In this document: piece by piece, positions 28,275-52,694 of the stretch
Numbering within the stretch: position 1 is the stretch's first letter
Layout: each line of letters opens with the position of its first letter
NCBI RefSeq assembly: GCF_006345805.1
Contig: NC_042998.1
Span: 21,514,001-21,578,000, forward strand
DNA: 64,000 nucleotides
Direction: 5' to 3'
From: Octopus sinensis
Taxonomy: Eukaryota
Notes under the pieces: generated by a model
Database searches by the model: none
Told to the model about the DNA's origin: nothing
Seen by the model: only the letters and a program-made list of their open reading frames with translations
Program-made: the position numbers and the translations under genes

Positions 28275-28382
28275 ACAGAAGACCAACTAAAAGAATCTGT
28301 AATTAACATAAGACGAACAATTATTGCTACTCTTTTCTGTTGTTTTCCATCAGGTATTGTTGCTCTTGTTAGTGCAGTTAAA
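28275..28382 (+). CDS. G2 exon 3: CD225 intramembrane segment
   Basis: ttccag acceptor, gtaagt donor, 108 nt: TEDQLKESVINIRRTIIATLFCCFPSGIVALVSAVK. Confidence 0.92.
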
Positions 28383-28440
28383 GTAAGTAAATACGAACAT
28401 TTCTTGCAAGAACTTCTGTTTATTCGCATACTTTTTATCC

Positions 28441-29290: not shown

Positions 29291-30121
29291 ACTTCAAGAT
29301 TGAGTTGTCTCTTTGTGGTTGAGTCATAGACTGTTTGAGGTTCCCTCATGGAGTTGGTACGCATTTAGTTGATGGAGATTATAGAGGGGAAGCATAATTA
29401 AAGGCCCTAAACAACACCAAACGAACATCATGATCATAATAGTTGTGAAAATGGTTCTTATATAAAGGCTCACCTCTAATGCGTGTTTGCTCCATTATGT
29501 CTAACAATAACCGTTTCAAGTATTCCAAACACAGCAGTCTTATTTTAACTCATCTTTAATATCTGTCAACTCACCATATCATTGTAAATAAGGTTTCTAT
29601 TAATCCAGTCTACAGAAAATAGCTTTAACCCCTAAGTAGCAACTAGCTAAGAAACAGCATGGCATTTAACAGCGTTGATAAAACACCTGCTTTTATAAGA
29701 ACAATGGTTATGAAACTGACGAAATATCACTTCGCCACCCCCGGAACCACACACACACTACAAAAATATTGGTAGTATTTGTGGTCATACCAGCTCCCCT
29801 CCATCCACTCCTTTATTAAGAAGAAATTCTATTGTTCATCCATATAATTCCATATAATTGCTACGACGCATAAAATATTTAGCAGTATTTTGTCTGTTTT
29901 TACGTTCTGAGTTCATATTACTTCTGGTCTACTTTGCCTTTCATCCTTTAGGGATACATAAAATAAGTAATTGTTTGAGTACTGAGATCGATGTAATTCA
30001 CTTACACACTCCTCCGAAATTGCTGGCCTTGTGACAAATTTAGAAATCAACATATTTGCTGTTGTTCAGTTTTATTGACGTGCTTTAAATATGAACTAAT
30101 TCTTGTCTTTCTATCTTCTAG

Positions 30122-30265
30122 GCATACAAAATGGCCAAAAATGGAAATTTAGAAGGTGCAACCCGCGCAAACAATACTGCAAAACAATTCATCAAACTAT
30201 CACATTTTGCTGCTTTTCTTGCGTATATTTTGTATGTGATTTTAATCCTCATTAACTTTACTTAA
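30122..30265 (+). CDS. G2 exon 4: CD225 loop + C-terminal TM; spliced protein 203 aa
   Basis: AYKMAKNGNLEGATRANNTAKQFIKLSHFAAFLAYILYVILILINFT*; all four exons join in frame with GT-AG introns. Confidence 0.92.
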   Translation, partial: AYKMAKNGNLEGATRANNTAKQFIKLSHFAAFLAYILYVILILINFT

Positions 30266-30440
30266 AAATTCACTAGATAATGATATATACTGACCGGTGA
30301 AATCTAGCACTTCAGCCTGATAGCAAGAACCCATAAAGCAGTAAAATTATGAGAGTATGGAGATATTCCTGAACCTATTGTACCATTCCTTCACTCCAAT
30401 TTAATCACCCACGAAATCAACGGGTAATTTGGGTTAATAT

Positions 30441-30659
30441 TTTTTCTTTATTGCACACAAGGGGCTAAACATAGAGAGGAAAAAGAAGGACAGACAAAGG
30501 GATTAAGTCGATTACATCGACCCCAGTGCGAAACTGGTACTTTATTTATCGAACCCGAAATGATAAAAGGCAAAGTCGGCCTCGGCGGAATTTGAACTCA
30601 GACGAAATACCGGTAGGCATTTCGCCCGGCGCGCTAACGTTCCTGCCAGCTCGCCGCCT
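30441..30659 (-). mobile_element. SINE family 1 downstream of the G2 stop (paralog 52852-53070)
   Basis: TSD atttgggttaa(t/a)at at 30427-30440 and 30663-30676; shared by G2/G3, absent from G1. Confidence 0.9.
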
Positions 30660-31544
30660 GCTATTTGGGTTAAAATCGGTTTAAATATTTCTTGTTATCA
30701 TGTCAAACAATGGGAAGTGGAGTTCACAACAAACATACTAATATTATTTTGCAGACACGAAAGTAAACCTTCAACGCAGTAAGTCTGTAAGGACGGCAGC
30801 TAAAGACTTATAGCACGAAAGAAAGAAAAATCTTTGCCAGCGGCTATCTAGAGGACTCGAACTCGCACCGCCTAGATATTGTCTACCGACAATACCATTA
30901 CGCTGGACAGCACCGCGCGGTAAATTATCGTCAAATTAAAAGCTACTTCGAATGCAATAACACTTTACAAACAAACTTTGCTATTCTGCACACCAGAAAA
31001 TAATGATTTTATTGTACTATCGTCTGTAGAATAATATCTGAAAGTGTTTTCCGTTAATAAAATTCAATATTTTAAATAATGAATTTTATAACAAAATAGT
31101 AGTTGTTTAAAATTTTAGATACATCGATAAATCAACTGGTATATTCTATGACGAGCGACAGCAGCAGTATTAATGGCAACAACAATAACTACTACTACTA
31201 ATACTGCAGCTGTGTCTGCTGTTGCTACTATTGCGACTAATGCAACTACGTGCCAGACACTCAAGTGGAAAGGCACTAACAAGAAATATGGGCAGATATA
31301 GACTTCATCAACCGAGACTGATCAAAAGACGTTGCCCAGGTGCAATTCGTAAAGGTGACCCTCGTAGTAAATCATTCTGCTGACTTCTGTAGAAATGAAG
31401 AATTTGCTCTTATTCCCACTTACCTTAGAAAACGGAGAGCGAGGATAAATATATCCGGTGTGCCACCGGATGTGGTCATCTAGTGAGTAGTGGTTTGCGA
31501 AGATCTGGCGGTAAGTGATATTCTCCTGAACGTTAGGAAATATA

Positions 31545-31776
31545 TATTTATTTACTACCCACAAGGGGCTAAACATAGAGAGGACAAACAAGGACAGACA
31601 AACAGATTAAGTCGATTACATCGACCCCAGTGCGAAACTGGTACTTTATTTATCGATCCCGAAAGGATGAAAGGCAAAGTCGACCTCGGCGGAATTTGAA
31701 CTCAGAACGTAACGAGAGACGATATAGCGCTAAGCATTTCGCCCGGCGCGCTAACGTTTCTGCCAGCTCATCGCCT
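31545..31776 (-). mobile_element. SINE family 1 (paralog 53975-54205)
   Basis: Full head and core; TSD acgtta(g/t)gaaatata intact in the G3-unit copy. Confidence 0.9.
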
Positions 31777-32056
31777 TGTACGTTGATTCGGAACAGGACT
31801 GGGAGATTTATTAGACGAATCTAGAACAGCTGGTAAAAAGATCTTCACTTATTACAGCTCACAAACAAAGCAGACATTCACGTCACGCCACACACGACAT
31901 GAATAGTGAAAGCGAAACCGGTCGACAAGCACAATAAATGATATATTAAAGATTATATTAAAACTATGTAATGTGGGAGCATTTTTCTTCTTTAATTTCA
32001 TATATATATTACAATTCACCACTCGGGGATAATCAAAATCCCTCCTTTTCTGTTAC

Positions 32057-32130
<74 letters not shown>

Positions 32131-32154
32131 TTCTATGTAGAAGACGACTTTTCT

Positions 32155-32940
32155 TTAAAGCTCCTCGTAGAATGACATAAACTAGCCTGCTTTCTGAATG
32201 CAATTTTTTCCGACGAGAGTTCCGGACCCCAGTAATGAATTCATTTGCATATAGCCAATCGGAGCTCACCATGACCTTGTTGTCAAGTTAACAAACACAC
32301 TCCATCATTTAATCGCAAGACTAAGAAACGAGTTGAAGTCGAACGATCTCCAGCTTCTGCCTGGTTTTTGGAGGCAAATAATTAGATTGATTTGCATCCA
32401 TACCTATTATCGGATTTTGTTAGAGCCCCGTAAGTTAAAGATGTGGATGTGAAAAATATGGATTGGGGGTGATGTACTAGCAACCCTCTCCCCTCACTGA
32501 TTTACAAAGTAAGCAAGGACACAAATAACTATGCAGAGGCAGCCATGGTTGAAACTAGAACAATATCAAAAATCATTATTAAAAGGGAAAAGAAGCATGG
32601 TGATTCCTTACCCAACTGACCTTATCGTATCGTCCATCACTTGTTATGCGTCCATAAACTTGTTTGATTGTTGAGCTCTGGTTGGCTGTATGAAGACGAG
32701 TTTATAACTGGGATCCGGAACTCTCGTGTGAAAAAGAAATCGCTTCCCGTACACTTGATAAGTAAATTCTATCCCGAGTGGTATTACTAGATATTCGCTA
32801 CGGTGCATATGTAGGAGATATAAGGGTAAACACCAGTTTATATCATAGTTTCTTGGCGCATTTCACATTTTCACCATTAGGATTGTTTGAAACCCAACGA
32901 TTAGATGGTCGACACTTATCTGCAGCTTAATATTCTCGGA
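32155..32940. mobile_element. Putative non-autonomous DNA element with internal 64-bp imperfect inverted repeat (paralog 55224-55980)
   Basis: 32204-32267 is approximately the reverse complement of 32673-32735; termini uncertain. Confidence 0.4.
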
Positions 32941-33670
32941 TCATTTGTTAGTTTTGGGCATCTAAAATGCATTCTAAACACTAAATGCTGGGCTCCAAAC
33001 GTGCATAACGTTGGAACACGCGTAAGAACGATAATATAAACTTGCATTTGTCCTTAGGCCTTTCACTCCTATTTATACACACACACGCACATACAAACAG
33101 TCAAACAATTATATCTTAAATACAATATGTAAACAACGTGTTTGTACGCTAATTTGTAAATAATATACATGCGTACGCTTAGAAAAACAAGAAAAAAAAC
33201 ATTTAACATTATTTTGCTGCTCATTATTAATTCATGAGTAAAGTCTATTTCGTTCGACAAAGATAGAAACGTAGCAAGAAAGGTAGAGAGAGAGGAGAGA
33301 GAGTTTTTAACTACTTATATGGATACTGCAATGAGTAATACACACAGTGATGCATACAAATACACATACACACACTCACATAAATACATCGTTCCGAATT
33401 TAGTCCCAGTGCATGACACCTTCGGGTCGGGTCGACCAAAGCCTTGTGAGTAGATTTGGTAGGCAGAAACAGAAAGAAGCCCGGCGTATATATATATAGA
33501 GAACAATCTCGAGTATAACCAGCCGAAATTGCAAAGATAATCTGGAACTCGGCTGAGGATCCATCTTTGTTTTCCTTGTATCGTCTGTCTGGATATTTTG
33601 TTGTCCCTTTTTTGTTTCACCTAATCGTATGAATGTTTTGCGTTCTTGTCCCATTTTTGTATATATATAT

Positions 33671-33858
33671 AATAGCTGACGGTGACCCGCTCTACGCGCG
33701 GGTAAGAGTGTGGTATATATATATATAAATGTATGAGAGAGGACTGAAAAATGAAATATTTTCAAACATAAACATGATTTGTTTTAAGAGAAAGCATCTC
33801 ATGATTGTGTGGTGTTGATGGTGGCGATGATAATTCTCTTTATGAATGCAGACAGACG

Positions 33859-33928
<70 letters not shown>

Positions 33929-34756
33929 CAGCGCTGGCGAAAGAACGATAGTAGACGTATTTAAATGACGTTAACCTAGGCCACTGGCATCCTCATTTTA
34001 CATGTGCCTGTAAATTTTGGAGTTAATCCGACGGGATGTAGTGGCCTTTAACCCCGCAAAAATAAATAATATCTGTTACCTTTCTGAAAGACCTAAAGTA
34101 GGAATATTTAAACTTTTGCGGCTGTCATTGAGAGACGCGTTGCAGAAGCAAGAGAGACGGCGGAGGTGCCACAAATCGTTATAGAGAGAGAGAAAAAGGA
34201 GAGAAGGGGAAAAAGGGAGAGATCGAGAAAGAAAAGGTGATATATGAAAGAGAGGACTGAAAAATTAAATATTTTGAAACCTAAACATGATAGAGAAAGA
34301 CAGGCAGACAATAGAATGCGATGGCGAGATTCATAATATTTGTTCTCATGATTGTGTGGTGGTGTGTGTGGCGATCATAATTCTCTCTATGAATGCAGAC
34401 AGCGAGATATAGAATGCCGTTTGGCGAAGTTATAAAGAGAAAGTGAAGGGGAGTTAGACGCCGTTATCGACGTTATATATAGAAAGTGATGGGGAGAGAA
34501 AATAGAGTGAGTGAGTGAGGGAGGAAGACAGATACATAAAAGAATGAGAATCGACTTGTCAAAGTGAGTTTTTGTCCCTAGCAACGACACCTTTTAAGAT
34601 AGGGATTTCTAACCGAACCCACTGGCATCCCCACCTCATTTTACATGTCCCTGTAAATTTTGGAGATAATCCGACGGGATCTAGTGGCCTTTAAACCGTT
34701 CCAGACAAACAAACAAACAAACAATCTTTTCGCATTTCAGTTTTATAAATAGAGAT
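33671..34756 (+). mobile_element. Helentron/Helitron-like non-autonomous element, G2-unit specific
   Basis: 5' AATAGCTGAC..CCCGCTCTACGCGCGGG hairpin and 3' ACAAACAAAC..TTTCGCATTTCAGTTTTATAAATAGAGAT; internal duplicated blocks; empty (TA)n site at about 56720. Confidence 0.8.
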
Positions 34757-34759
34757 ATA

Positions 34760-35550
34760 TAAGAAAATTTCCGAGAGGGAAGTTTCGGAAAATTTACACA
34801 ATCTCACATTTTCTCTCGTAACTTTCAGGAAGACGGGTATTTTTTCATAAAAATTTATTCAAATCCATTTCAAACGACATAGATTACAATTATAAAAAAA
34901 TTTGTTGGGGAAATTTTTTAGGAGATTTTCCCCATTTTTTTCTTAAACCACAGCCTTCGAAATGATGGAGTTTGAGCATTTTCGATAAAATCAAAAACAT
35001 TGTTATATTTTCAAAGGGAAAAGTCAGTGATTTAATGTTGTTTTGGCTGTTGTTTCTAGCACATGCAAACAAAAACTCTCCTCGTTTCTGTATCACACTC
35101 GCATGTATTGATGTTTTTCAATATTTTTTCTCCATAAATAAAAATTATATGCTACAAAACGAAAATTTGAGAAATTATGAAGTTTTTACAAACACACTTT
35201 CTACCTCCGATTAAAATATTGAAGAGCCTGAGAAGGTCGTTGCTGGTATTTATCCATAATGATTTGAAAAATTTACGGAGAAGTATTCGCATGTCAAGTG
35301 ACTTGATCTGAGAATGTGTGCTGAAACAAAACAATTACAACGTGGAGGATGTTTGAAAGCCTTTCAAAAACACGCAAAAATAATTAGTTTCACTTTAACA
35401 TTAAAATTTCATCTGTGTCAAAACATTTTAGTCGCATTGAAGCCGAGTCCGATCCACTACAAAAACTTCACAAAAGTGATACAAACAAAGTTTTTTCAGT
35501 GAACATCAATCACACACTCACACACGCATTCATTGCCTTTTATTTGCATT
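34760..35550 (+). mobile_element. Second HINE-like repeat (paralog 56726-57500)
   Basis: 5' hairpin aaatttccga...tcggaaaattt and 3' cacacactcacacacgcattcattgccttttattt; classification tentative. Confidence 0.45.
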
Positions 35551-38065
35551 ACACCCAAACCTAACAGCACCTCTCCGCTTGTTCCGACCTAGAGCATCAT
35601 TTTCCCGATCACTTTTGTTCATATCTAGTTTCTTCAGGTTTTCCTTCACACAGTCTTTATAACTTTTCTTCGGCTTATGTTGTGGTCACTTACCAGAGTT
35701 GAGCTCACCATAAAAAAGATGCTTTAGCAAACGCTCGAATTTCATTCTAATAACATGTCCAGTTCATCTCATTTTCAGCCAAGGTAACATGCTGTTCAAT
35801 TGAGCTGCAACGTACCATGCGCAAAACCTCTGTATGTGGTATGGAACATTGCTTGACTCCTAAGATACGTCTGAGGCACTTTTGATGAAATCTCTCCAGC
35901 ATTTGTATGTGATGCTTGTAAGTGGTCCATGTCTCACTTGAATAAAGAAGTGCAGACAATACACACACTATATAGACACTGATTTTTGTCTGCAGGGAAA
36001 TGCCTCTATCCGCCCATACTCGCTTTTAGAGCTTTCCAAAATGTAACACCTCCCTTCCCTATTCGATTGTATATCTCTGCATCAAGACGACCATCTCTTG
36101 ACAGTGTACTTCTTAGGTAAACAAAGGAATCAACGACTTCTAACATTGTTCCATTCACAAAAATATTTGGTTCAGAATATGTTTGTTCTGGCACGGGACT
36201 AAACATTACTTTGGTTTTCCCCAAATGTACATAAGCAGTGGAAAACCTCTCCATTAAATGTTGCATATCCCCCTCTGATTGTGCCCACAAATCAGCATCA
36301 TCAACATAAAGAAATTCTCTAAGTAGTATTTTGAAAGTATTTGCAGTGAAACCGGTTCGAATTAAAAATGCGACCAGACATCTGAAATCTGGTTCTGATT
36401 CTCCTGCTGCAATCCTTGAAAGTAAAGGGTAAAGACCCCCTTCGGTCATGAATGACCATGGGATTGCACCTAGAAAGTTACCCTCCTAGACACAAGTCCG
36501 GGCACGGTTGTTTATGGAAGACCAGCAGTCGCCCATGCATACCAGCTTCCCCTCTCCACGCCACCAGTGTTATCCAAGGGAAAGACAAAGGTCGATACAG
36601 CTTGGCACCAGTGACGTCGCAACTCATTTCTACAGCTGAGTGAACTGGAGCAACGTGAAATAAAGTGCCTTGCTCAAGAACACAACACTCAGCCCGGTCC
36701 GGGATTCGAGCTCACAACCTCACGATCGTAAGCTTGACGCTCTAACCACTGAGCCATGCGCCTTGAAAGTATACCAAAGTAATGCAGCAAAATAAATAGA
36801 GAAAAGAGTAGGGGCAGGAATGTCTCCCTGTTAGACACTGTTGTCCTCCGACAAATCATGAGATGGATCACCATTAAAGACTGCCCGAGCTTTCATGTTC
36901 CTGTGTAGTTTTATAAAAATGCTCACAAAATGTGTTGGACATCCAAGTCTACACAAAACAATCCACAGTGCCTTCCTGTTTGCCGTGTCAAATGCCTTAG
37001 TTAAATCTATGAAGACCTTGTATAGTGGCATTTGTTCCACTAAGCATTTCTCTTGAACCTGCCTCACAGAAAATATCATGTCCATGGTTCCTCGTTCGGG
37101 TCTGAAACCACATTGTTCTTCAGGAATCACATGCAGACACACATTCTTAACAAGATGATCTAACATGATCCTTCGAAGTATCTTCCCGGTATGTACCAGA
37201 AGAATTGTCACTCTAGAATTACCACACACTACTTTGGGGCCCTTGCCTTTGTATACAGAGATTAGAATGACTTTTAATCATTCTTGTGGGACAGAAATCT
37301 TGTAAGTCAGCTTTCCGATGCAACCCATTGTTGTTCACCTTCCCTATTCCATAACGCCCAAGTACCTTCCAAGCACTATAGTTTCTACCTACACGTGCAT
37401 TAAAGTCACCAAGCACAACCAACTTCTCATTCTAAGGGACTCACAGAATACTTCTTCTAAGCTCCTCATAAAACACATGGATATTTTCGTCACCAGCTGA
37501 AAGTGTAAGGGCATAAATAGAGAAAACAGTTACAAAACGTCCACAAGAAAGAGGGATCTGGAGTTTAATTATGCGTGTATTTATGCTTTGTGGTTGTTCT
37601 GGGTCTTTTAGCCAATCACTTCTAATTGCAAACCAAACATCACTTTCCCTTTTCTCTCTCTCCCCGGCTTCCCAACACAGAATAACGTGAACCTGCCGCT
37701 CTTTCGACAAGATGATCTTCATCTAAACATCTTGTTTCAGAAAGAGCTGCAATATCAAGATTAAGACGCCTTAGCTCCTTAGTTACTAGAGCTGTTCTTC
37801 TCTCAGGTCTATCTGCTCGATCTAAAAGAGTTCTCACATTCCAACAGACCAGGTTAAGAGAAACCTTATTCCTCGCATACTTGCAATAATTATTTTCATC
37901 AATTCTTTGTTCATTCCTGCTAAACTGATTCACTGTTAGCCACAGTAAACTTACCAGCAGAGAGAAGTCAGACAATTTTAGTGCACCTTTTCTAGCACTT
38001 TACCAATTTATCCAGGTAAGCAGTATTCTCCTTAAAAGGGCTGCTCAGACGCAGGATTCTCTACC
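35551..38065 (-). mobile_element. RTE-clade LINE, internally deleted, dead
   Basis: APE (CWNVRTLLDR...ELRRLNLDIAALSETR; [10 protein letters not shown]), RT (PEEQCGFRPERGT; FIDLTKAFDT; YVDDADL) and C-terminus (LLYSSETW); many frameshifts; APE-RT linker missing. Confidence 0.93.
36425..36763 (-). mobile_element. SINE family 3 (CORE-like), full length, nested in the RTE
   Basis: TSD ccttgaaagta at 36414-36424 and 36761-36771; empty site at about 58365 in the G3 unit. Confidence 0.93.
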
Positions 38066-38279
38066 GAAAACAGTTCTTGCCCATGAAAACTTATTAGCGA
38101 TGTTAAGATAAGAACCCTGCCGGCTTATGTGCAGATTTGTAACTGTATACTTCCAACTGGTCAAATCTGAAAACGTGGCATATATGAATAAATAAATAAA
38201 TTCACAATTAAAACTGTAATAAAGTAAAATAAAAAAAAAAGATATAAATATATACAAATATATAAATGATATATAAATA

Positions 38280-39090
38280 TACTAGCAGAAGTTCCCGGCG
38301 CTGCCCGGGTTAAAGAAAACAATGGATTTTTAAAACGCCATCTAGATTTCGCAGGCCTCAGCTGCTAGTAACTGATATACCAACTTTCTACATTAACAAC
38401 TCTCCAGCCCATGCAAACATGGAACCTAGACGTTAAGTGAAATGTTAAAAGTAAGTTTTCAACATTTATATATGTATATAAAGTAAATACACGTAATTCA
38501 AGAACACATTTTGTGTAGCTTATTTCGTAAACGGAAAACAGGTAGAGATTATAAACAATGAAAGGCCAAATTTTGGCGATTCATTTGACAGAGGAAGTAG
38601 AAAGCCAATCCTATGATAAATCTAATTTTGAATCTTGAAATTGTAGTGTAATCTGCATAATGAACTGCTGGATTATAACTGAAAGCTGCTTCATAAAAGT
38701 TACTTCTCTCAGCTGTTGCAACTGCTCTTCGTTCTGCAGTGGAGATCCTATTCCTTTTCAGCAGTGCATATCTCTGTTCATCACTTTGAGATGCTGTGTC
38801 CTTTGTAATGAACAGTCTCTTCGTTTCTTGGTATGCTTCCTGTTATGCAGATGTCTCTCTTTCCTTGGACAGGGACATTCTTTTGGCTGACCGTGACATT
38901 TTCATTCTAGGGATGGTTATATACGTATACAGAAATACTGGGTTGCAGAAGACAGTAAACAGTGAAAATATTTGGGTAACGGAAATTATATTTCTTAATA
39001 CGATGGGTAAAGCAAGAAATTTTAAAGGAAAATAAAGGATTCAACGGGTTGAAGCGAAATTTGTCATTCAACCAGGGCCAGTATCGAAGG
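38280..39090 (+). mobile_element. HINE-like element (paralog 60027-60838)
   Basis: 5' ACTAGCAGAAGTTCCCGGCGCTGCCCGGG hairpin in a TA-rich site; 3' end unclear. Confidence 0.55.
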
Positions 39091-39094
39091 AACT

Positions 39095-39295
<201 letters not shown>

Positions 39296-39879
39296 AACGT
39301 CACTGATGCTAGTAAACCGGTAGTAAATATATTTTTAAAGTTTTCAAAGACGTGAATATGATTTAAAAAGTAATTTGTTTTCATCAGCAATGGATGTCAG
39401 GGTGACAATAAATTTCTGAAAGTTACTTCACAGAGAGTTACCTCTGTTCTCCAAGTAACCAAGGAACAGGTGTTTTCTGCCACGGGAGGCCTGTTACTTA
39501 TTATGTGAAACATCTTAAGAGTCTAAAACAACCCATAGAACGTAAGTAATATATGTGCTCTCAAATTTAAAATCTTGAAATGCTGTGCTGAGGAGAAAAA
39601 TGAACGATTGAAAGTGTGATCTTTGCATTTTTCATATCGATCTAATTCTGAAACGCGTCCACAGGTATGCTTTGAGTATATGTTGTCCGGGAGTTTCTTC
39701 TTATAGTAGAAGAAATAGCTAAGTTCTTTAGCTGCTATTTCTAAAGTTCGGTATGTGGTGAAGCAAATTTTTTTGCTGAACCCTAATTATAATTATATTC
39801 ATATTTATAAAAAATATATATATATATACAAATATACACACACAAACACACACACACACACACAAACGTACACATAATG

Positions 39880-40740
39880 CTGGATGGCCGTTGACTAAAC
39901 ATGAGTTCTTCTGCCCTACAACAGGTCATATTTTCGTCCTGCAGGGTGTCCAACAATTACCGTCCTCCCCAAGTAAGGTTGGTGGAGTTTCCAGTTTAGT
40001 CGCTGAGGAACCGACCATGTGAAATATTGTACTGGGTTACATGTTACCAGCAGCGCTCAAGAGCGACTTGACCTAACATAAATACATACATACGTACGTA
40101 CGTACACACATACATACATACATACATACAAACATACATACATACATACATACATACGCACATAAATACATACATACATACATACATACGCACATACATA
40201 CATACGTACGTACATACATACATACATACATACATGCGTACATACATACATACATACATACATGCGTACATACATACATACATACATACGCACATACATA
40301 CATACATACTTACATACATACATACGCACATACATACATACATACATTGATACATACATACATATGCACATACATACATACATACGTACGTACGTACATA
40401 CATACATACATACATACATACATACATACATACATACATACACATACATACATACGTACATACATACATACGCACATACATACATACATACATACATACA
40501 TACATACATACATACGCACATACATACATACACACATACATACATACATACATACATACATACATACGCACATACACTCATACATACATACATACGCACA
40601 TGCATACACTCATACATACGCACATACACTCATACACACATACATACATACATACGTACATACATACATACATACATACATACATACATACATACATACA
40701 CACAAACATACATATACATACATACATACGCACATACTAA
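39880..40740 (+). repeat. Retroposon-like 3' end followed by an approx. 660-bp (CATA)n/(CGTA) tract
   Basis: Microsatellite directly visible at 40075-40740; reading the preceding 200 nt as a retroposon tail is inference. Confidence 0.7.
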
Positions 40741-41567
40741 CTTGTGCCTCCTGACGTACATGAACACCGATTTCCAAAAGTTCTTCTTAAGGAAACATTC
40801 AGAGCCTTCATGAAGATATGCATTTTGTTTGGCTATTAAATACTTGCTATCATGTTTTGATCATATGTAAGTTCCGTTTAACACCATTTGAAGCCTACGT
40901 AAATATATCGCCGTTGGGGAGGCCTCAATAAATAGATTACTTTTTTCTTTTAGGCGTTCACTACATCAAACTTCATGCGATATAATTTTTTGTATCTCAA
41001 ATCTGTACGATGTGGTTTAGTGCAAATTTCCCTGGATTTTGTTCACAAGTTGAGCAACTACGCAGCGTTAGTCTTCATACTAAAAATAAACTGCATCGAA
41101 CGCTATTGTCAATGTAGGTCTTGTTAAATATAATGCTCTTCTTTCTTCCATGACTTGATAATTCTATCATAAAATAGAGACAACAGTTCGAAATTCTTTA
41201 TGGGCCCAAGAGGAATGCAATTCCCAAGAGTAGCAACGTGCCTTCAACCTTAAAGTTACCTAACAAAAAGATAAGGATCGCAACTTTTGAATATACAACG
41301 GTTTACGTATAAGCTATTAACGAATTGCTATAAGCTGCAAGGAAAGTATTTCATAAACAAAACTGTTGCACTCCACAAAATAAATTTCCCACGTTAGTGA
41401 CATAACCTGTTACACTGCATATATAGTTATGCCATCACTGCCCTCAATTCGCACAGAGAGGAATAAAAGTACCACTGCGAGTCAGGCGAGTAGGACCCCA
41501 ACATTTGCGGATTTTACCATTTCAGTCTTCTATCGCTAGCTGCACGAAACAGTGGTGGTTCACAACC

Positions 41568-41577
41568 ATGGAAGCCT
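41568..41577 (+). CDS. CD225 paralog G3 coding exon 1 (ATG GAA GCC T)
   Basis: caaccATGG followed by gtaagt; homologous to 18739-18748. Confidence 0.8.
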
Positions 41578-42074
41578 GTAAGTATTATATGTTAATGAAT
41601 TTTCATAAGTATATATTAATGAATTTTCCAAAGTATGTGTTAATGAGTTTTGTAAGATCTCACTATATGTCCGCTTCTATAATGTTTTTTAAAGCACACA
41701 CACAGATTGTCTTGATAAAGTGTGAAGAAAATTCCACATTTCCGTTCTGTCAGCTCACGAATGTTAATTAAAGACTTGTATGAACATCCTTGCAACATAC
41801 ACTGGAGTAATTGAACCGAATTTCAAGAAATGTTTATGAGTTCTGATAAAAATATTTTAAAAACCATACGTGCATGTGAGTATGTATATATGTATATATG
41901 TAATCAAACTATGTATAGCCGTACATGCTCGCTTGTGTGGAGATGAACGGAGAAAAATTCCGTACGTAAAAAATAGGACTTTGTAACTGTTACTTAAAAC
42001 TTGAGCTACGTTATATACATACTTTCACATGCACTTAAAGACACGCACACACACACACAGATAGATAAATATTT

Positions 42075-42310
42075 TTTGTTTATTAGCCACACAGGACTGA
42101 ACACACAGGGGAAAATTTCAAAGTAGAGCTTTTCTTTTTAGGTTTCCGATCAAAAGGGAACGTAAAAAAAAACGTTCAATAGTAATCGTGTATCACAGAA
42201 ATGTCATGATGTAAAGTGTATAGGGGGAAACAGATAAAGTTTATCCGTGGAAAGAAAAGCCTACGGAAAAGACCACGGGAACCTCGGTCAATAATGTCAC
42301 ATGTTAACAC
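42075..42310 (-). mobile_element. Probable LINE 3' end next to GATA; same family at 63835-64000
   Basis: Shared ggccacacagg.ctg.acaca...gtagagcttttc and ttt.cgatcaa.aggga.cgtaaaa blocks. Confidence 0.55.
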
Positions 42311-43430
42311 ATTCATTTGCAAGTAAGTAACTCTCTGTTTTTCCGGGTTCATAGGATTATGCTCAAGGTGGCTTCGTCATTCATATGTGCCGTTCTTGCT
42401 ACATTCACCCATCTTTTTTTTTTGAAACATTCGCTACTCTCTCTTGCCTCTCTACTCTCACTTTCCTTTTCAAGTGATACTTAATATCTAAACATCTACT
42501 ACATCAGACTTCTATTATTTTTTTACGACCGCTTTATTACCTCCACTACATCCTCCCTCCCACTGCTACCCAACCTGTAGATCTAAGATTTGCTTTCCTT
42601 CAGCCCTTATACATTCGTCTTTGAACACACATCCCCAAACCCTTCCTAACATGAGTACACCTCACTATACTGATTAGTATATATTTAGTACGCAGCATCT
42701 ATCTGCTACTCCTCTTCATTTTGCTATAGTGAAATACACTCATTTTTGAACCAGTCTTTCTCCAAGATTGGAACTGGTAACACCTGATTCTCTTCGCTCT
42801 GGATTATAAACAAGTATCTCTCACAATTTTGATTCTAGTAATGGTCATTACTGATTTTTCTCATTCGAACACAGAGCTAACTAACGAATACTTATTTTAA
42901 TTGGATTTTAATTGGATTTCTCCTCCTTTTCTCGACAAAATTATCTACAAAATCATTGATGAGTAATGTTCTTCCACCTGTATATCTGTTTAAACCCCTC
43001 AATTTCTGATGTAATTTGTCTTTGTAAAGTCTTACCAAACTTTTTGCCTTTTCATGTATATATATATATATATATATATAAAATTAGGATTCAGTTGAAT
43101 TAAGTGCATACAGGAAAGTACCAAGCCACCAAGCCAGTTCGGTATAGTACGCGCAGTTCGAAATTACATGAAATTAAAAAGTAAATAAGTAAAAGGAATG
43201 ACCGTTTCAAGTGGCTCCATTTCATCGATGATGAAAACTTTACATCAGTTTGAAATAATCCGCTCTCTCCAGACGCAGACGATCATATAGATTTCAAACA
43301 TAAAGCATAAACCATTAATTATTAGAAAAAATTCCACAAGAACCTAAGACAATTAGAATGTTTTTCTTTGCTACTCTTTGCCACAAGAATAGCAAAGGGA
43401 AGCTTTGTCACTTATTTGCTTTATGTACAA

Positions 43431-43560
<130 letters not shown>

Positions 43561-43727
43561 ATGTGTATGTATGTAGGTACAGCACCAGTAACAGTTAAGC
43601 TTCGTGCAATGGCCATACTCGATTTCGAGGGGGAAGCCATAATGTATGTATGTATATATATGTATATACAAACACAGACACAGACACACACACAAACACG
43701 CACGCACACACAAACACACAAACACAC

Positions 43728-43776
<49 letters not shown>

Positions 43777-44656
43777 ATATAGATATAGATATAATTACAA
43801 ATTGGGATAGGGGTTGAGAGTGTAACCCACCATGGGATAACATATATCCAATATACTGCCAGTAAAGCACCCAACAAAGTTAATACATAAATGTTAAGAA
43901 TTGCGATGCAATTAATTCATTTATTGTATTATATGGGGAAAGGTAAAATGTTTTACCACAAATTAATAATACAAAATAAGAAAATGGAGAAATACACCTT
44001 AATCAATAATCAACTACCAGATAGTACCCAATCACATAATTTATTAAACCACTACATAAGAACATCAAGGTCAAACATAATAGTATAGAACAAAACAATG
44101 CACATCAATGAGTAATATGATACAATAAGTGCAATATGTATAAGTGAATATAAATAAATATAAATATAAATATAAACTACAGCTGTTTCAGTCATGCAGA
44201 TATGGGTATCTCATTATGTTCATATTAGCCAGGTGTGATAAGTTAATATGTGGTTATAAATGAGACACTTACAGAAATATCCCAAGGCCTCTTCAGAGAT
44301 TATAAAGTACAAACTAAACTAAATATGAATATCAGAGGAGGTACACCCATACAAGAGTGGGCACATACCCATAATATATAATATACACATACATAAGAGT
44401 GCATATACCCATACTTCTATATATATATATACATATACATAATAATATACAACATTATACATACATATGTTCTATATTCAAGTTTACAGTTGGTCAAACC
44501 AATATATTAGAATATTACAATATACAAACATACACATATCTATATTCAAATGAACATATACAGATTCAAGAGTTCATTATATTAAGTTACAAAGTGCCAT
44601 TAATATTACCATCATTATTATTACCATTGCCACTATTGCTACTAATATTATTATTA

Positions 44657-44714
<58 letters not shown>

Positions 44715-45557
44715 AATAATACCAGCAAAACAATATATGCATCACGCGGTTCACAGTACATATTATGTGGGAAAAAATCAGGTGGAATACATCAACATCA
44801 TAGTATATTGGAATAGCAATATAATAGCAACAACAACAACAATAATACAATACAATGCAAAACATTATAGATCGGCAAATACATATAAATTGAAAAATAT
44901 TAGTTTACATCATAGCAAAGTTCACAAGTGTGCAAGCATATAAACGCATTCCAGCCATAGGTTTTGACGGTGATATGTATAAAGTATTAAGTTTAGAGAT
45001 AGTTTAAGATCGAAAGCTCAATTCGATTGGCTACCACATTTGAATTTCAATTGTCTTCGTTATGGTTGGTTTGTTAAGAAATACTTACATACGTACACAC
45101 GTATATGTGCGCTTACACATATATACATGGAAATACAAGCTTACATACACACATACATGCTTACATACATAACTACTCACGTATATATCCATAAATATAT
45201 ATATATATACATGTAAACAAACACATATATCCAAAATTAGCCACGTACACATATATGTATATATATACATACACATACATACCGTTAACTAAAATAGTAT
45301 TAAGAATCATAAAATTAGAGTAATATTAAATGTTAATGCACCGAAATGGGTGGAAGGATAATTCGCAATACAGGTTTCACCATAACCAATATAAAGACGA
45401 AATACGTTAATAGCATAAGATACATAATTAAAAATTACACCGCATTTTTCGTAAACATTCATAGTGCTGAGAAAGCTTCCAGATAAACACAATTTCGAAA
45501 GTGTTCCCACTCAAACCTCCGCCAAAAAACATTCACAGGCATGGGAAAACTGCACCA

Positions 45558-45643
<86 letters not shown>

Positions 45644-45898
45644 CCGCACACAGACATATACATATATACACTCGAATGCAATGCATCCGCAAACATTGGT
45701 ATACACATACATACACACTCATATATATATTCATATATATAAAAACATATACACACATATCCACCCATGAATATATATATATACATATAAGTATACACAT
45801 GAACATATGTAGACATATCCACATACACGTTCGAAATTACAGATATACATGTCTGCACACAGCTTTGCATATACATACATTCATATATATATGTATAT

Positions 45899-46074
<176 letters not shown>

Positions 46075-46339
46075 ATATATATGTTGGTACATACACATAT
46101 ATGTGTGTGTGCGTCCCGGATGTCTTCTATATGTGGAGGAATTTTGTCCAAGGTGACCAAACACAAAGTTTCCTAGCCATATATTAATGCCTATATATAT
46201 ATGTATGTGTGTGTATGTATCTATTTCTATATAAATGTAATGTTATGTAGATAAATATGTGTGTCTATGTAAATATACTTGTGTGCAAGATATAATTCTT
46301 ATACGATAAGGAAATGTCTATTTGTCAGAAAAAGTAAAA

Positions 46340-47099
46340 GAAAATTACTTCATCTAATCTAAAAGGTTCTGAAAGAAACTGAAAAATGCAGCAGAAGATT
46401 ATTTTTTTTCTCAAACGAGAAAACCTTCGGCCGGGATCAAAACGTCACAGGAAGAAATGACAGATGGTTAAATGCAGGCCCTTCTGAAGTGTTATATATA
46501 CAAGATTTCGTGCAACTGTCATAGTTTTAGGGGTTGTTAGCAATGAAGGACTTGAGATGCCTCCTTACTTCTTTCCACAAGGCCTTAGAGTTAACTATGC
46601 GGGATACGTTTAGATCATGGGACAAATTGTTAAGCCCTGGATAGACAGTGAATGCAATAGAAGGCCATATGTATTTCAGTAAGACTCTGCACTATCACAC
46701 ATGGCTCTAGTAACAAAGGATCGCCGATAATGTTCATGATCACAACTCCTAGCGTTTGGGAGCCTTATATCCCAGATCTCAATCCATTGGACAATCACAT
46801 GTGGAAGGTTGCTGAGAGAGAGGTCAATGAACACACACATAACACCACAAAAACCTTTGAAAGCTGACATAGTCAGAGTAATGTCCAGAATGAACCAGGA
46901 CCACTTGATTCAAGCATGTAGAAGATTTAGATCTCATATAGAAGCAGTTGTTGAAGCTGAAGGCAGCTTTATTGTACAACATTATAGAAAAAAAGTTTAG
47001 TTTTATCCTCATAGTATTTTTTGACAAATATATTTATTATTTGCTATATATTTGCTTCTTTTATAAACATAAATCTGTCCTCAAGTATCTTACGCACAC

Positions 47100-47101
<2 letters not shown>
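46340..47101 (+). mobile_element. maT (DD37D-like) transposon 3' half, dead
   Basis: Degenerate FSNEKTF..DQ..RNDRWL, PQGLRVN, KPWIDS, DSALSH, PDLNPLD, RFRSHIEAVVEAEG; terminal sequence at 47075-47101. Confidence 0.85.
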
Positions 47102-47177
<76 letters not shown>

Positions 47178-47201
47178 GTGTGTATGTATGTATCATGTAT
47201 G

Positions 47202-47235
<34 letters not shown>

Positions 47236-47253
47236 TGTATGTATGTATGTATG

Positions 47254-47300
<47 letters not shown>

Positions 47301-48769
47301 GTAACAGAAAGGAAGAATTTCGATTATCCCCATGTGGTGAGTTGTAATATATATAAGAAATTAAAAAAGGAAAATACGCACACTTTACATAGTTTTAATA
47401 TAAGTTTTAATATATCGACCGGTTCCGCTATCGCTATTCATGATATTATGTTTTACTTACTTGAATATGTATTTTCTTAGATTTTGTCCATGTTGTGTAT
47501 GATGATATTTACGAGTGATTCACTCGTAAATATCATCACGCAACTGGCTCTCTTATTTGATGTACTTTGTTTTAACAGCACTAACAGTTATCAAGAAACC
47601 AATTGATCCAGGGATATCAATTTTCCCATTCTGCAGCTTTCTACCGAGATTATGTATTAATTTCTTTGCTATTCGCCCGCTTTTTGTTGTGCCTATAGCA
47701 TTTCCAGTAAATGGTGGTTTATTATCGGATTTTTCGACACTGACGGAAAATGTATAACTAATTCACTACAATTTTGTATTAAATTAGGGGTTATAATACA
47801 TTCTCGATTTTGCTACATAAAAAAAATCTAAATTTGTAATATTAAATTGTTGAAGTCTTAACTTATAGGCAAATATTTTAAATTTACAGACACGATATAC
47901 TATTTCTTTTCCGTTTATTAAACTGAAAAAGAAAAGATGATTGTCCCTTTCAATTTCAGCTATTATGTAAAAATATAAAAGGACATGAATGACCATTGAA
48001 ATCTTTAAACTCTATCTTCAACAGCAATATTTTAAGTTTGTTTACTTCTTGGTCTCGCTTAATGTACTTGCAAAGAAAGAAAATATCTTGGTATCTGCAT
48101 GAGAATTTGTGAACGACTGCAGAATTACTTAATTCGGAATGAAGACGATTTGTACATCTTTATATTGAAGATTTGCTGTTAAGGGAGGTCTACATATAGC
48201 AAGTTTTATTCGTCTAAATATATAACATGATCATATTTAGATAGCTGTGAATTATCATTATCAGCTACAGCATTTGTAAAATAGTTGGCTTTTAGCAAAA
48301 TCCCCAATGAGAAATGTAAAGGTGGACAATTTACTCGTGTATTTTAATAGATTTTACCTTTAAAATCTAATCTGACCTCATCTTGGAGCAATGAATTAAA
48401 AACTGAAAAAAATTACAAAGACAATAACTGCATTAACTCCAGCTTAGCATCTTTTCATGCAGATTATCGTTATATATATCATACCAGCAATGTGTTCTTG
48501 GTAATCAGTTAGAGGGAATTCTGTTTTCATCTTATATGTTTCAGCTATTAAAGAAAAGCAGAAGTGAAAACATATAAAAGTATTTAACTATCCTGATGAT
48601 TTCGTCAATGTGTTAGTGATGATATTAATTAATTTTTACAATTTTAAGCAAATTGTCATAAGAAAATTTACAGTCAGCAACCAGCATATAACATTTGTTG
48701 ATTAATTAGATATATGAGGAATGTACACTTTGAAATATCGCTTGTGGAATCTAATTTCTTTTTTTACAG

Positions 48770-49191
48770 ATAACACAAAACTTGCTGAGCGGAACGATGA
48801 ACCACCTGGATACTATGAGTACCATGGATACACAACTGATTTCTATAATGCTTCGACATCTGGACATTCCGAACAACCTGGATATCCACCACTACCAGCA
48901 TATACACCACGCTCCGAATATCCACCACCACCACCATATACACCACAACCCGAAGATTCTCCACTATCCGAATATCCACCACAACATGAATATCCACCAC
49001 TATCCGAAAATCCACCACTATCCGAATATCCACCACTATCCGAATATCCACCACAGTCCGGATATCCACTACAAACGGGTTATCCACCACTACCTGGATA
49101 CCCGTCAGAACCATCACCTGTCCTACAACAACCATCACAACAACAACAACAGCAACAACCACAAAGACAACATCAGCAAGTGACTGATACT
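48770..49191 (+). CDS. G3 exon 2: Pro/Tyr/Gln-rich N-terminus with four extra 6-aa repeats
   Basis: Same splice sites as G2 exon 2; 422 nt versus 350 nt (+72 nt in frame). Confidence 0.88.
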
Positions 49192-50693
49192 GTAAGCAAA
49201 TATCTTTTCGTTTCATTTTACGTCTTTATTATTCTTCAAGCATTTATCCTGGACAGAGATCTTATCCGTAGCAAGTTTTAGTCATCAAAAGGTGAATATT
49301 CTAGGAAATCCCCTTTAAGAGATTTTAGCCATTCATATCATTATATGGAGCAGAATAAATGATTTAGAACTATAATGGTAACAGTAGCAAACGGAGTACC
49401 TGGCTTGGAAGATATATACACACGACAATATGCATGTGTGCGTGTATGTGCATGTGTACACGTATGTACGCTTATGTCTGTGTATGTGTATGTGTGTGTC
49501 TCTGTGTGTGTATGTTTGCATGTGAGTGTGAATGCATGAAGGGCTGTCTCAAATATTCCATCAGCTAAATTCAACTCACAAAATATTTGTCAACTCAAGA
49601 CTATGGTACAGCCTAGCTTCCTCTTCTGCAAGTTATGGTGCAGCAGGAACAAACCTGGAGACGTCTTCAGGGAATTTCTTAACTACAAAGTGATGTGTTC
49701 ACATACAAACGTAACACCGTTTCTGGTGGTCGTCTCACATCTTTCCCTCTCGTTCAGAACACCTACTACAAAATATAATGATTACTATGGTTTAGAAGGA
49801 AACGTGTATTCCGCCTGACCATGCTACCTTGTAAGAATCTGGAGACCACAGAAGAGATCTTATGTATTTCAAGGGCATTGAGTAGCCTTCAGTGTGAGAC
49901 ACTATCAAACGCCTTCCTTAGTTATCCATCTATGTTCAGGTTCTTCTACTTGTTCCGGCATTCTCTACTAAAGTTTTATTCATGGATTCCTCTTATAACC
50001 TTTTGTAGCTTGTCGAAGTATAGATTTCTGTTCCAAGAAATTTTATATTCTTTCAGTTAGTATATATGTGAGAATCTTGCAGGTGGTGTTGTGACATGTA
50101 ATTCGTCGGGTATTCTTTGGATTTTTCCTCTTGCAATTTCATCGAAAACTCATATATCCGCCCATAAAAGTTCCATCACTCTATTGCTACATTCCACTTA
50201 GGAGGTCTATTGACATGGTTGGTCCTTTTCTGTGACGTCCTGATACCTAATTGAGCAGTTACAACTTTAGCAGTGAAATAAATACGGTTATTAAACGTTG
50301 TTTGGGCATTTCCTTTATTACTAAAAACTTGTCTAAGAGCAACACTCTATATCATGATCATTTTTAATGTTGCTTCTAAACATTAGCATGTTCACAAAGA
50401 TGAATGGAGAGTTGCATGTAAAGGTAATTATTCAATTTACGTACTTACTGTGTAATTAGTGCGTTGTACCAAGTTACCTTGTGTTGAGATATCACGCATT
50501 TAAAAAAGAAACTACACTTTATGTAACGAAAATCCTTCCGAATTTTTCATTGCTGCATCACGATGTTTTCCTTCCATTGCACCGTCGTTACTGGATTAAG
50601 TTTGCTTTGTGGAGTTCGTCCAAGTTGTGCTCCTCATCAACATAAACATCCCTAGATAATTATATTAACTTTTTTGATATGTTCTCTTTCCAG

Positions 50694-50801
50694 ACAGAAG
50701 ACCAATTAAAAGAATCTGTAATTAACATTAGACGAACAATTATTGCTACCCTTTTCTGCTGTTTTGCATCAGGTATTGTTGCTCTTGCTAGTGCAGTTAA
50801 A
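50694..50801 (+). CDS. G3 exon 3: CD225 intramembrane segment
   Basis: TEDQLKESVINIRRTIIATLFCCFASGIVALASAVK; cag/gtaagt boundaries. Confidence 0.92.
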
Positions 50802-52544
50802 GTAAGTAAATACGAACATTTCTTGCAAGAACTTCTATTTATTTGCATACCTTTTATCCAACCGTGGCTGTATGTCAAGAAATATGCTTACCAACCACAT
50901 GGTTCCGGGATCGGTTCTACTGCACCTGGAGTAAGTGATCTGTACAATAGACAGGTGCTGATCAAAGCCATGTAAACGGATTAAGCAGATGAAAACTGAA
51001 AGAAACCCATCATGCACACAAATACATACACACATGTATATATATATGCATAAAAACATGTGAGTGTGTGTATGTGTATATGTGTGAGTGTGTGGAAAAG
51101 AAAGAGAGTATCTGTGTTTGTGTTTGTCAACTACAACCATAGATAACCGATGTTGGCGTGTTTACGTTCTGGTAGCGTTTCGGCAAAAGAAATGATAAAA
51201 TAAGTACCGGCCATAAAAATAAAATATGTACAGGTGTCGATCCGTTCAACTAGAATTCTTTAAGGCGATGCTCCAGCATAGCCACAGTCTAGTGACTGAA
51301 ACAAATACTATGCCCTGTTAAAGCCTTCGGCCAATTAAAATTGTTGTAAATTACTATAAATTGCCAACCTATAAGGTGATGTTTCGCATTGTGCTTAAGG
51401 CAGATGAAACATTATATTTTGTAGTAGGGGTCTGAATGAGAGGGAAAGATGTGAGACGACCACCAAAAATGGCCAAGCAAAAGTCTACGGTCACTTCACC
51501 TAAACAAATCAAGATACAGTGTTTCAAAACAGAAAAATGTCTACAATGGAAATTTATTATATAATGTTCTTTTCAAGAAGTTACTGTTGATATTTCGTGT
51601 GGCTACTCCTCACCTTGAATGATTGCTTCAATGCACTTAGGAAGAGATGTGTACAAATCCTTCACCATCTTCACAGGCATTTGATGTCATTCTCTGTGGC
51701 TGATCTCCCACAACACTTCAAGATTGAGTTGTCTCTTTGTGGTTGTGTCATAGACTGTTTGCGGTTCCCTCATGGTGTTGATACGCATTTAGTTGATGGA
51801 GATTATAGAGGAGAAGCATAATTAAAGGTCCTAAACAAGACCAAACGAACATCATGATCATAATAGTTGTGAAAATGGTTCTTATATTAAGGCTCACCTC
51901 TAATGCGTGTTTGCTCCATTATGTCTAACAATAACTGTTTCAAGTATTCCAAACACAGCAGTCTTGTTTTAACTCATCATTAATATCTGCCAACTCACCA
52001 TATCATTGTAAATAAGGTTTCTATTAATCCAGTCTACATAAAATAGCTTTAACCCCTAAGAGGCAACTGGCTAAGAAACAGCGTGGCATTTAACAGCGTT
52101 GATAAAACATCTGCTTTTATAAGAGCAATGGTTATGAAACTGACGAAATATCACTTCACCACCCCCGGAACCACACACACACCACAAAAATATTGGTAGA
52201 ATTTGTGGTCACACCAGCTCCCCTCCATTCACGCCTTTATTAAGAAGAAATTCTATTGTTCATCCATATAATTCCATATAATTGCTACGACGCATAAAAT
52301 ATTTAGCAGTATTTTGTCTGTTTTTACGTTCTGAGTTCAGATTCCTCCGGGTCCACTTTGTCTTTCATCCTTTAGGGATAAGTAAAATAAGTACTTGCTG
52401 AGTACTGGGATCGATGTAATTCACTTACACACTCCTCCGAAATTGCTGGCCTTGTGACAAAATTAGAAATCAACATATTTGTTGTTGTTCAGTTTTATTG
52501 ACGTGCTTTAAATATAAACTAATTCTTGTCTTTCTATCTTCTAG

Positions 52545-52694
52545 GCATACAAAATGGCCAAAAATGGAAATTTAGAAGGTGCAACCCGCGCAAACGATAC
52601 TGCAAAACGATTAATCAAAATATCATGTTATGGTGCTATTCTTCCGTATATTTTGTATGTGGCATTATTCCTCAATTACTTAAATATATTATGA
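52545..52694 (+). CDS. G3 exon 4: CD225 loop + C-terminal TM; spliced protein 229 aa
   Basis: AYKMAKNGNLEGATRANDTAKRLIKISCYGAILPYILYVALFLNYLNIL*. Confidence 0.92.
   Translation, partial: AYKMAKNGNLEGATRANDTAKRLIKISCYGAILPYILYVALFLNYLNIL

Follow-up and report, generated by a model that had tools for sequence, protein, structure and literature searches.

A divergent second transmembrane helix in a mosaic tandem array of CD225/dispanin genes of Octopus sinensis

Why should two neighbouring gene copies with closely similar non-coding DNA differ so densely in the codons of a single transmembrane helix? The question is raised by a 64,000-nt stretch of Octopus sinensis chromosome CM016860.1 (hereafter the window), which carries on its + strand a tandem series of CD225/dispanin ("PRRT1-like") genes of four exons each, here numbered G1, G2, G3 and G4, the last present as exon 1 only. 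A first-pass annotation had read the final exons of G2 and G3 as the outcome of strong diversifying selection on the second transmembrane segment (TM2) and tail, as in a host-pathogen or partner-specificity arms race. We find that the array is a mosaic shaped by interlocus recombination, and this is a more solid finding than selection; comparison of the copies makes diversifying selection on TM2 plausible but unproven, and an arms race is speculation.

The divergent patch in exon 4 of G2 and G3

The gene models agree with the exon 4 coordinates that the first-pass annotation had given for G2 and G3 (Table 1), and its comparison of the two exons proved exact: codons 1-17 are identical, codons 18-47 (the TM2 segment) differ at the 15 residue pairs that it listed, and no codon differs in a purely synonymous way. 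G3 has 49 codons in this exon and G2 has 47. Within codons 18-47 there are 18 nucleotide differences, which NG86 counting divides into 17 nonsynonymous (N) and one synonymous (S), giving pN 0.243 and pS 0.050. Exon 3 has the opposite pattern, as had been claimed, with four synonymous and two nonsynonymous differences (dN/dS ratio, omega, of 0.13 under GY94, p=0.018), and the end of the adjoining intron, said to differ at about 15 of 240 positions, differs at 14 of 239 aligned sites in its last 240 nt. G1 is different again in the same segment, also as described.

The count of 15 changes and the two additional residues of G3 are correct, but the last four changes and the extension are not separate events. 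Nucleotide alignment of the tail under four gap-penalty settings places a 5-nt deletion in G3 within codons 44-45, so that the G2 sequence ...TTACTTAA(stop) is read in a different frame in G3 and the old stop codon is read through; I/N, N/Y, F/L, T/N and the two extra amino acids are therefore one frameshift and not four substitutions. A second G3 deletion, of 7 nt, lies in the same alignment directly after the position of the G2 stop codon, and the CTAGAT deleted in G3 is retained in G1. Independent substitutions are thus confined to codons 18-43, where they affect 11 codons and 14 nucleotides (13 N : 1 S).

The resulting patch is ~115 nt long, begins mid-exon, ends beyond the G2 stop codon and has ~5x the density of differences of the 4% non-coding background; in the 14.7-kb block over which the two units are alike, few 90-nt windows are as dense as its G2 side. 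Differences occupy 18 of 90 sites in the TM2 segment vs 73 of 1724 in intron 3 (Fisher p=1.6e-7), and at the background rate 17 or more nonsynonymous differences would have a Poisson probability of 1.2e-8. When the patch is polarised with G1 as outgroup, seven sites are unique to G3, one is unique to G2 and eight cannot be assigned. The transition:transversion count is 6:10 in the patch, 19:23 and 50:63 in other islands of divergence, and 300:238 in the background.

Tests of the ratio of nonsynonymous to synonymous change are less decisive. The pairwise GY94 likelihood-ratio test on the TM2 segment gives omega=10 (p=0.029), falling to 6.8 (p=0.059) when the frameshifted tail is removed, and the N:S skew in codons 18-47 has p=0.048 in a Fisher test on sites. 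Binomial tests that adopt the intron mutation spectrum give P(S<=1)=0.02 for codons 18-47 and 0.056 for codons 18-43, and those that assume equal mutation rates give 0.049 and 0.10, respectively. The contrast between exons 3 and 4, which the first-pass annotation had proposed to check, is significant as heterogeneity (p=0.0065), and the whole aligned coding sequence (CDS) of G2 and G3 has omega 1.57 (p=0.31). The omega and N:S p values are nominal, the segment having been chosen post hoc for looking extreme, and the nonsynonymous excess in the TM2 patch is only nominally significant. Of the claim of strong diversifying selection, what stands is that TM2 is the fastest-diverging part of these proteins and that nonsynonymous changes in the G2/G3 patch far exceed the local neutral rate, omega being estimated at 6.8-10; what does not stand is the word "strong", with p values of ~0.03-0.06, or 0.06-0.10 without the tail.

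The substitutions themselves have little further structure. The 18 differences fall on codon positions 1:2:3 as 8:7:3, which is not significantly non-uniform, and of the three changes at third positions, two are TTY-to-TTA transversions, by chance nonsynonymous. A helical-wheel count shows substituted positions all around TM2, with no pattern confined to one face. The A34P change puts a proline into TM2 of G3, and proline also occurs in TM2 of other paralogues.

Mosaic structure of the array

The similarity of G2 and G3 is itself patchy. Non-coding divergence between them is 4.1-4.4% over 12 kb, and the high identity is restricted to a 14.7-kb block (Table 1); most of intron 1 is unalignable, and divergence in the exon-1 region is 13.8%. 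Inside the block, intron 2 contains a ~230-nt non-coding island that is clearly homologous in alignment and as dense in differences as the exon 4 patch. Because of this island and the 13.8% exon-1 region, patchy high divergence can be said to arise here without coding selection. No further copy of the intron-2 island was present in the available sequence. In the 3' untranslated region (UTR), a mini-cluster of five sites in 26 nt (30359-30385), at which G2 departs from the state common to G1 and G3, suggests a small exchange patch or a G2-specific cluster of mutations.

Exon 2 of G2 and G3 differs by 11 N : 1 S, a ratio that we did not accept as separate evidence of selection: five of the amino-acid differences result from X-to-CCA (Pro) changes in a PLSEYPP repeat, beside a 72-nt in-frame expansion, and point to repeat homogenisation within the gene. 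The expansion, of PLSEYPP-type repeat, lies at 48950-49030 of G3 exon 2 (26550-26560 in G2).

G1 makes the mosaic plainest. Its introns and flanks are 90-100% identical to those of G2 and G3, and its exons 3 and 4 are only 61% and 60-72% identical, with divergence falling off with distance from exon 3. Exon dS between G1 and G2/G3 is 0.4-1.3 with omega 0.5-1.0, vs intron divergence of at most 6.5% (Poisson p=9e-7). The pattern is not one of accelerated protein evolution alone; with dS ~10x intron divergence and omega only 0.5-1.0, it points to homogenised introns. The three genes are about equidistant over the 3'-most 800 nt of intron 3 (35 differences for G2-G3, 40 for G1-G3 and 49 for G1-G2), and G1 exon 4 is as far from G2 and G3 as it is from paralogues ~200 kb distant or belonging to other species. 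Old exons within young introns require interlocus recombination. Divergence and tree topology accordingly shift along the alignment, G1 being equidistant in intron 3 and a distant outgroup in the exons, and islands of 14-20% stand in a 4% background.

The more distant paralogues come from three octopus species. A full HMMER scan returned one close match (G2), the next relatives scoring at most 68 bits; a search seeded with an O. vulgaris paralogue recovered two further O. sinensis copies (locus L002, copies a and b), 150-220 kb upstream on the same chromosome, and loci in O. vulgaris (L003) and O. bimaculoides (L004). These were rejected as G2/G3 orthologues, being distant paralogues with 78-80% identity in non-coding DNA. 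The O. vulgaris protein P0008 starts with MEDN, as G4 does, and its locus too is paralogous, not orthologous, at 78-80% identity.

Across this wider set, comprising the paralogues ~200 kb away and those of O. vulgaris and O. bimaculoides, the end of intron 3 is 75-86% identical and more conserved than the adjoining exon (G2, Table 1; G3 52415-52544; G1 7314-7443; L002:17181-17310 and 56613-56742; L003:37203-37332; L004:39841-39970). Identity is 64-71% in the exon 4 loop and 42-57% in TM2, which is the least conserved part across paralogues and falls below the adjoining intron. A 3'UTR block (…CGGTGAA.T…CAGCCTGAT.GCAAGAA.CCATAAAGCAGTAAAA.TATGAGAGTAT) is common to G1-G3 and an O. vulgaris paralogue. 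Splicing or regulatory constraint, or homogenisation, could account for the conserved intron 3 end and for this block.

Two irregularities were seen at the L002b copy. A partial exon-3-like fragment (L002:52572-52643, …KLTAAILVTIFCC), ~130 nt upstream of the true exon 3, resembles a locally duplicated exon or a remnant of recombination, and annotated isoforms of the gene splice together exons of two neighbouring copies (P0151 vs P0011).

Explanations for the patch

The explanation that we tentatively prefer, at somewhat less than even confidence, is that the G2/G3 patch is a short tract replaced as part of the mosaic, in a helix under weak constraint or tolerant of diversity. Interlocus recombination, by gene conversion or unequal exchange, would keep long non-coding and some coding stretches 94-100% identical, and the CD225 exons, TM2 most of all, would stay or become different between copies. 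The ~115-nt patch would then have originated like the intron-2 island, as a replaced sequence, by conversion from an unsampled array member or as a patch missed by homogenisation, and it would lie in a part of the protein where amino-acid change is tolerated or favoured (omega ~1 or higher across the family). We infer replacement because the patch starts mid-exon, runs past the stop codon, includes two deletions and has an island-like transition:transversion ratio. If its neutral divergence were 14-18%, as in the other islands, 17 nonsynonymous differences would be unremarkable (p=0.02-0.14).

Several observations weigh against this explanation. One of ~20 silent sites differs in the patch, vs 2.8-3.6 expected at 14-18% divergence (P(S<=1)=0.12-0.23), and the tests for omega>1 are nominally positive (p 0.03-0.06). 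Given only two islands in a block of 14.7 kb, we estimate a probability of ~10% that either meets the ~600-nt CDS. A search for a donor of either TM2 version found none in the 178 kb covered (the window, L002 and L003) or among annotated relatives, the array itself reaching at least 21.29-21.58 Mb and beyond. The first-pass annotation had itself raised a conversion tract from an older paralogue with normal silent divergence; conversion is active in this locus, but the patch is nearly without silent divergence. A conversion donor, if there is one, must itself differ from G2 mainly by TM2 replacements. We also rejected a G1-like donor for the G3 patch: over codons 18-43, G1 has the G2 state at 6 of 14 sites and the G3 state at one.

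Positive (diversifying) selection in place, by which TM2 replacements were fixed in G3 once the two genes had recently been duplicated or homogenised (~4% neutral divergence), is a serious competitor, though on balance an unlikely one; its driver might be altered helix-helix partner specificity, oligomerisation or escape from an antagonist. It accounts directly for a pN of 0.22-0.24 vs a pS of 0.05, the latter close to the non-coding background of 0.041-0.044, for the excess of nonsynonymous differences over background and for the elevated GY94 omega values. The changes lie mostly on one lineage (7:1), G3 keeps an intact reading frame and intact splice sites, and exon 3 is under purifying selection, so G3 is not simply decaying. 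Positive selection together with gene conversion among lineage-specific duplicates is also on record in the related vertebrate IFITM genes (PMC3499546). Set against this are marginal, post hoc significance that weakens without the frameshifted tail, codon positions that are not significantly non-uniform, the two deletions and the spill into the 3'UTR, an equally dense non-coding island, substitutions that favour no single helix face, and a long-term TM2 omega that does not exceed 1 (0.83-0.98 for G1 vs G2/G3, compared with 6.8-10, p 0.029-0.059, for G2 vs G3). Mosaic replacement and selection in place are not mutually exclusive.

The selection signal can in any case not be taken as robust to recombination or gene conversion, the mosaicism being present in the same three-copy alignment. 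Since introns can be far younger than exons in recombining arrays, an N:S contrast over 30 codons is no proof of an arms race without recombination-aware tests, and with a marginal contrast in a confounding mosaic locus the proposal of a host-pathogen or partner-specificity arms race is not supported.

We consider it improbable that the patch records neutral damage in a G3 that is redundant, possibly not expressed, and becoming a pseudogene, whether the damage came from one complex mutation (error-prone break repair) or from relaxed constraint on the 3' end of the gene. Substitutions and two deletions are packed into ~115 nt, transversion-rich (6:10-12) and nearly all derived in G3, one deletion shifts the frame of the C-terminus, A34P puts proline into TM2, and G3 is seemingly unannotated. 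Yet exon 3 is conserved, the open reading frame (ORF) and splice sites are intact, the exon 2 indel is in frame, and proline occurs in TM2 of other paralogues too; relaxed constraint alone cannot surpass the neutral rate, which the patch does at 5x background, and random changes predict ~4 of 14 synonymous where one is observed. Very improbable, finally, is an assembly or polishing artefact in which mis-mapped short reads of another paralogue wrote a foreign patch into G3 or G2: in a multi-copy tandem array at ~96% identity polishing can readily cross between paralogues, the patches span only 115-230 nt and the exon 4 ORFs lack an independent copy in the protein collection, but both versions keep the open frame, hydrophobicity and flanking motifs, G2 is a RefSeq model, and a real paralogue bearing the sequence would still be needed.

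Gene models, family context and implications

The coordinates of the array are collected in Table 1. The G1, G2 and G3 copies are spaced ~22.4 kb apart and every splice site is canonical (AG/GT). The G4 exon-1 region (flanks 61979-62539) has 73% identity to that of G2, and the presence of this exon means that the array extends past the end of the window; with the L002 copies upstream, it covers at least 0.29 Mb. The spliced G2 product is identical (100%) to XP_036355051.1 (203 aa), the sole match of the G2 protein search, whose annotated gene (CM016860.1:21,532,739-21,544,265) has the same span as our model, 11,527 nt, and puts the window at ~21.514-21.578 Mb. NCBI's name for the protein, 'serine/threonine-protein kinase atg1-like', stems from low-complexity sequence and is wrong for a CD225 protein. 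The homologue search of the protein collection with G2 returned no match to the G3 protein, so that G3 is seemingly unannotated, though its ORF is intact; an exact search of the exon 4 ORFs against 15 billion proteins found no match.

Table 1. Features of the CD225/dispanin array, in window coordinates
Feature	Position	Strand	Description
G1 exon 2			Just upstream of the window
G1 exon 3	4830..4940	+	Helix 1 with FCCFF motif; ag/gt splice sites and translation; with exon 4 matches Pfam CD225
G1 exon 4 CDS	7444..7590	+	Loop, TM2, stop codon; vs G2/G3 dS 0.62-0.67, dN 0.43-0.51
G2 exon 1 CDS	18739..18748	+	ATGCAAGCCT then gt; M-Q-A and first base of Tyr; pattern search; protein N-terminus MQAY agrees
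'Young' block of G2 unit	25113..39836	+	~96% identical to 46113-61565 (G3 unit); BLAST/MAFFT pieces 2.9-6.5% mismatch
G2 exon 2	26373..26722	+	Pro/Tyr/Gln-rich N-terminal region, PPxY/LPxY motifs
Intron-2 divergence island, non-coding	27460..27690	+	37 mismatches/200 nt (~18%) and 9-nt indel; G3 counterpart ~49885-50124
G2 exon 3	28275..28382	+	First hydrophobic helix, FCCF; vs G3 4 S and 2 N, omega 0.13
Intron 3 last 130 nt, G2	29992..30121	+	93-98% identity among G1-G3; 75-86% to distant/other-species paralogues
G2 exon 4 CDS	30122..30265	+	Loop (GNLEG, A-x6-A motifs), TM2, 3-aa tail, stop codon
Divergent patch, G2 side	30173..30285	+	Codon 18 through stop into ~20 nt of 3'UTR; 14 substitutions in codons 18-43 and two indels
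G3 exon 1 CDS	41568..41577	+	ATGGAAGCCT then gt; M-E-A and first base of Tyr
G3 exon 2	48770..49191	+	72-nt in-frame expansion of PLSEYPP repeat
G3 exon 3	50694..50801	+	
G3 exon 4 CDS	52545..52694	+	49 codons and stop
Divergent patch, G3 side	52596..52700	+	Most polarisable changes derived here; 5-nt and 7-nt deletions
G4 exon 1 CDS	62281..62290	+	ATGGAAGACA then gt; encodes MED...

The proteins are bona fide CD225/dispanin members: G2, G3 and G1 (exons 3-4 only) score 49.9, 45.0 and 42.5 bits against Pfam CD225 (PF04505), for which the gathering cut-off is 27.1 bits. Hallmarks of dispanins are two hydrophobic helices, a long N-terminus, a C-terminus of <10 aa, a CC motif, and A-x6-A and G-D in the loop (PMC3282796). 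By hydropathy the helices of G2 are residues 134-158 and 179-203; an AlphaFold2 model built with 31 relatives places helices at 146-162 and 166-202, with a predicted local distance difference test score of 83-95 over the last 40 residues. The N-terminus is long (~120 aa) and rich in Pro, Tyr and Gln, with PPxY/LPxY motifs, and the C-terminal tail has only a few residues (<10 aa). In all three copies exons 3 and 4 join between ...SAVK and AYKMAKNG..., and all three have FCCF (the CC motif of helix 1), A-x6-A (as ATRANNTA, ATRANDTA and ANKANSVA) and GNLEG (GxxxG). The last sits at the position matching IFITM3 G91/G95 and PRRT2 G305, in the GxxxG region that drives oligomerisation in those proteins (PMC7665892).

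The octopus genes depart from the family pattern in forming an octopus-specific tandem array, in having G-N instead of G-D in the loop (Asp is replaced by Asn in G1-G3), and, in G2 and G3, at a TM2 glycine that is conserved in the family but does not strictly define it. Exon 4 codon 31 is Gly (GGT/GGC) in G1 and four other paralogues (L2a, L2b, L3 and that of O. bimaculoides), and Ala (GCT) in G2 and G3; codon 30 is Gly in G3 and G1, so G2 has Gly at neither. The two codons lie at 30209-30214 (G2), 52632-52637 (G3) and 7531-7536 (G1).

Judged by NCBI names and N-terminus, the octopus genes resemble the PRRT1-like/DSPC-D type. With PRRT1/SynDIG4-like (DSPD) and DSPC proteins they share a proline-rich N-terminus from extra 5' exons, molluscan relatives have the same PQPGY-type N-termini, and invertebrate dispanins are reportedly most like DSPC/DSPD (PMC3282796). 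The labels given to annotated relatives from O. sinensis, O. vulgaris, O. bimaculoides and further molluscs are 'PRRT1-like' or 'annexin A7-like', of which the latter is wrong. IFITMs (DSPA) are two-exon, vertebrate-restricted, interferon-induced genes (PMC3282796), and an IFITM assignment was rejected for these four-exon mollusc genes.

The surrounding DNA is ~36% GC, with many microsatellites and transposon remnants, and tRNA and Rfam scans of the window gave no match. Transposon content was noted at 5575-6630, 12595-13005 (-), 27300-27360, 1872-2195 (-), 36006-37229 (-) and 57885-59713 (-). It includes Tc1/mariner transposase remnants, the one in intron 3 being longer in G1 than in G2 and G3, and ORFs for reverse transcriptase/endonuclease of retrotransposons without long terminal repeats (non-LTR), common to the regions downstream of G2 and G3. 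In most paralogues exon 4 is preceded, ~70-250 nt upstream, by a SINE-like (short interspersed) element. Repeats of 8- to 12-nt period form a very long, imperfect array (39960-40830; ATAC/ATGC type, translating as 'MYVC'), and G1 intron 2 holds a compound trinucleotide repeat, (GTA/GGT/GCA)n (960-1140).

In the pattern known from the major histocompatibility complex (MHC), introns are homogenised by recombination and exons retain old diversity, in alleles under balancing selection. The octopus array likewise has old exon lineages in young, near-identical introns, but in paralogues rather than alleles. Conotoxins are a family with conserved introns and hypervariable exons. Venom families such as snake-venom PLA2 (phospholipase A2) also have exons more diverged than introns and UTRs (PMC6062510); in these dN exceeds dS and exon dS is similar in order to intron divergence, whereas between octopus G1 and G2/G3 the silent exon sites are also old. 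Vertebrate IFITM clusters are tandem lineage-specific duplicates with gene conversion, episodic dN>dS, a conserved CD225 core and a hypervariable C-terminal region that includes the transmembrane domain (PMC3499546), and with PPxY, palmitoylatable CC and GxxxG oligomerisation motifs (PMC7665892). The octopus array parallels them in tandem duplication, gene conversion and a variable C-terminal transmembrane segment, and differs in its ~120-aa N-terminus and four exons.

On a bolder proposal, TM2 and the tail would form a specificity cassette in which members are kept different (older members over the whole CD225 domain) by selection against homogenisation and by adaptive bursts, the rest being homogenised by recombination. 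We regard this as clearly unlikely. If the proposal were true, the array would be a cephalopod-specific repertoire of membrane-fusion or trafficking regulators, or of IFITM-like restriction factors, with distinct partners or targets.

CD225 proteins, among them IFITMs, PRRT2, TRARG1 and SynDIG, regulate membrane fusion and trafficking (PMC11730294), and the role of their C-terminal helix is poorly understood. A full-text literature search found no paper combining CD225 and octopus. The locus is a clean cautionary example for the reading of pairwise N:S counts in tandem arrays; a set of nearly identical paralogues with differences almost confined to TM2 would amount to a natural mutational scan of that helix, and would offer a first look at a lineage-specific expansion of the CD225 family in cephalopods.

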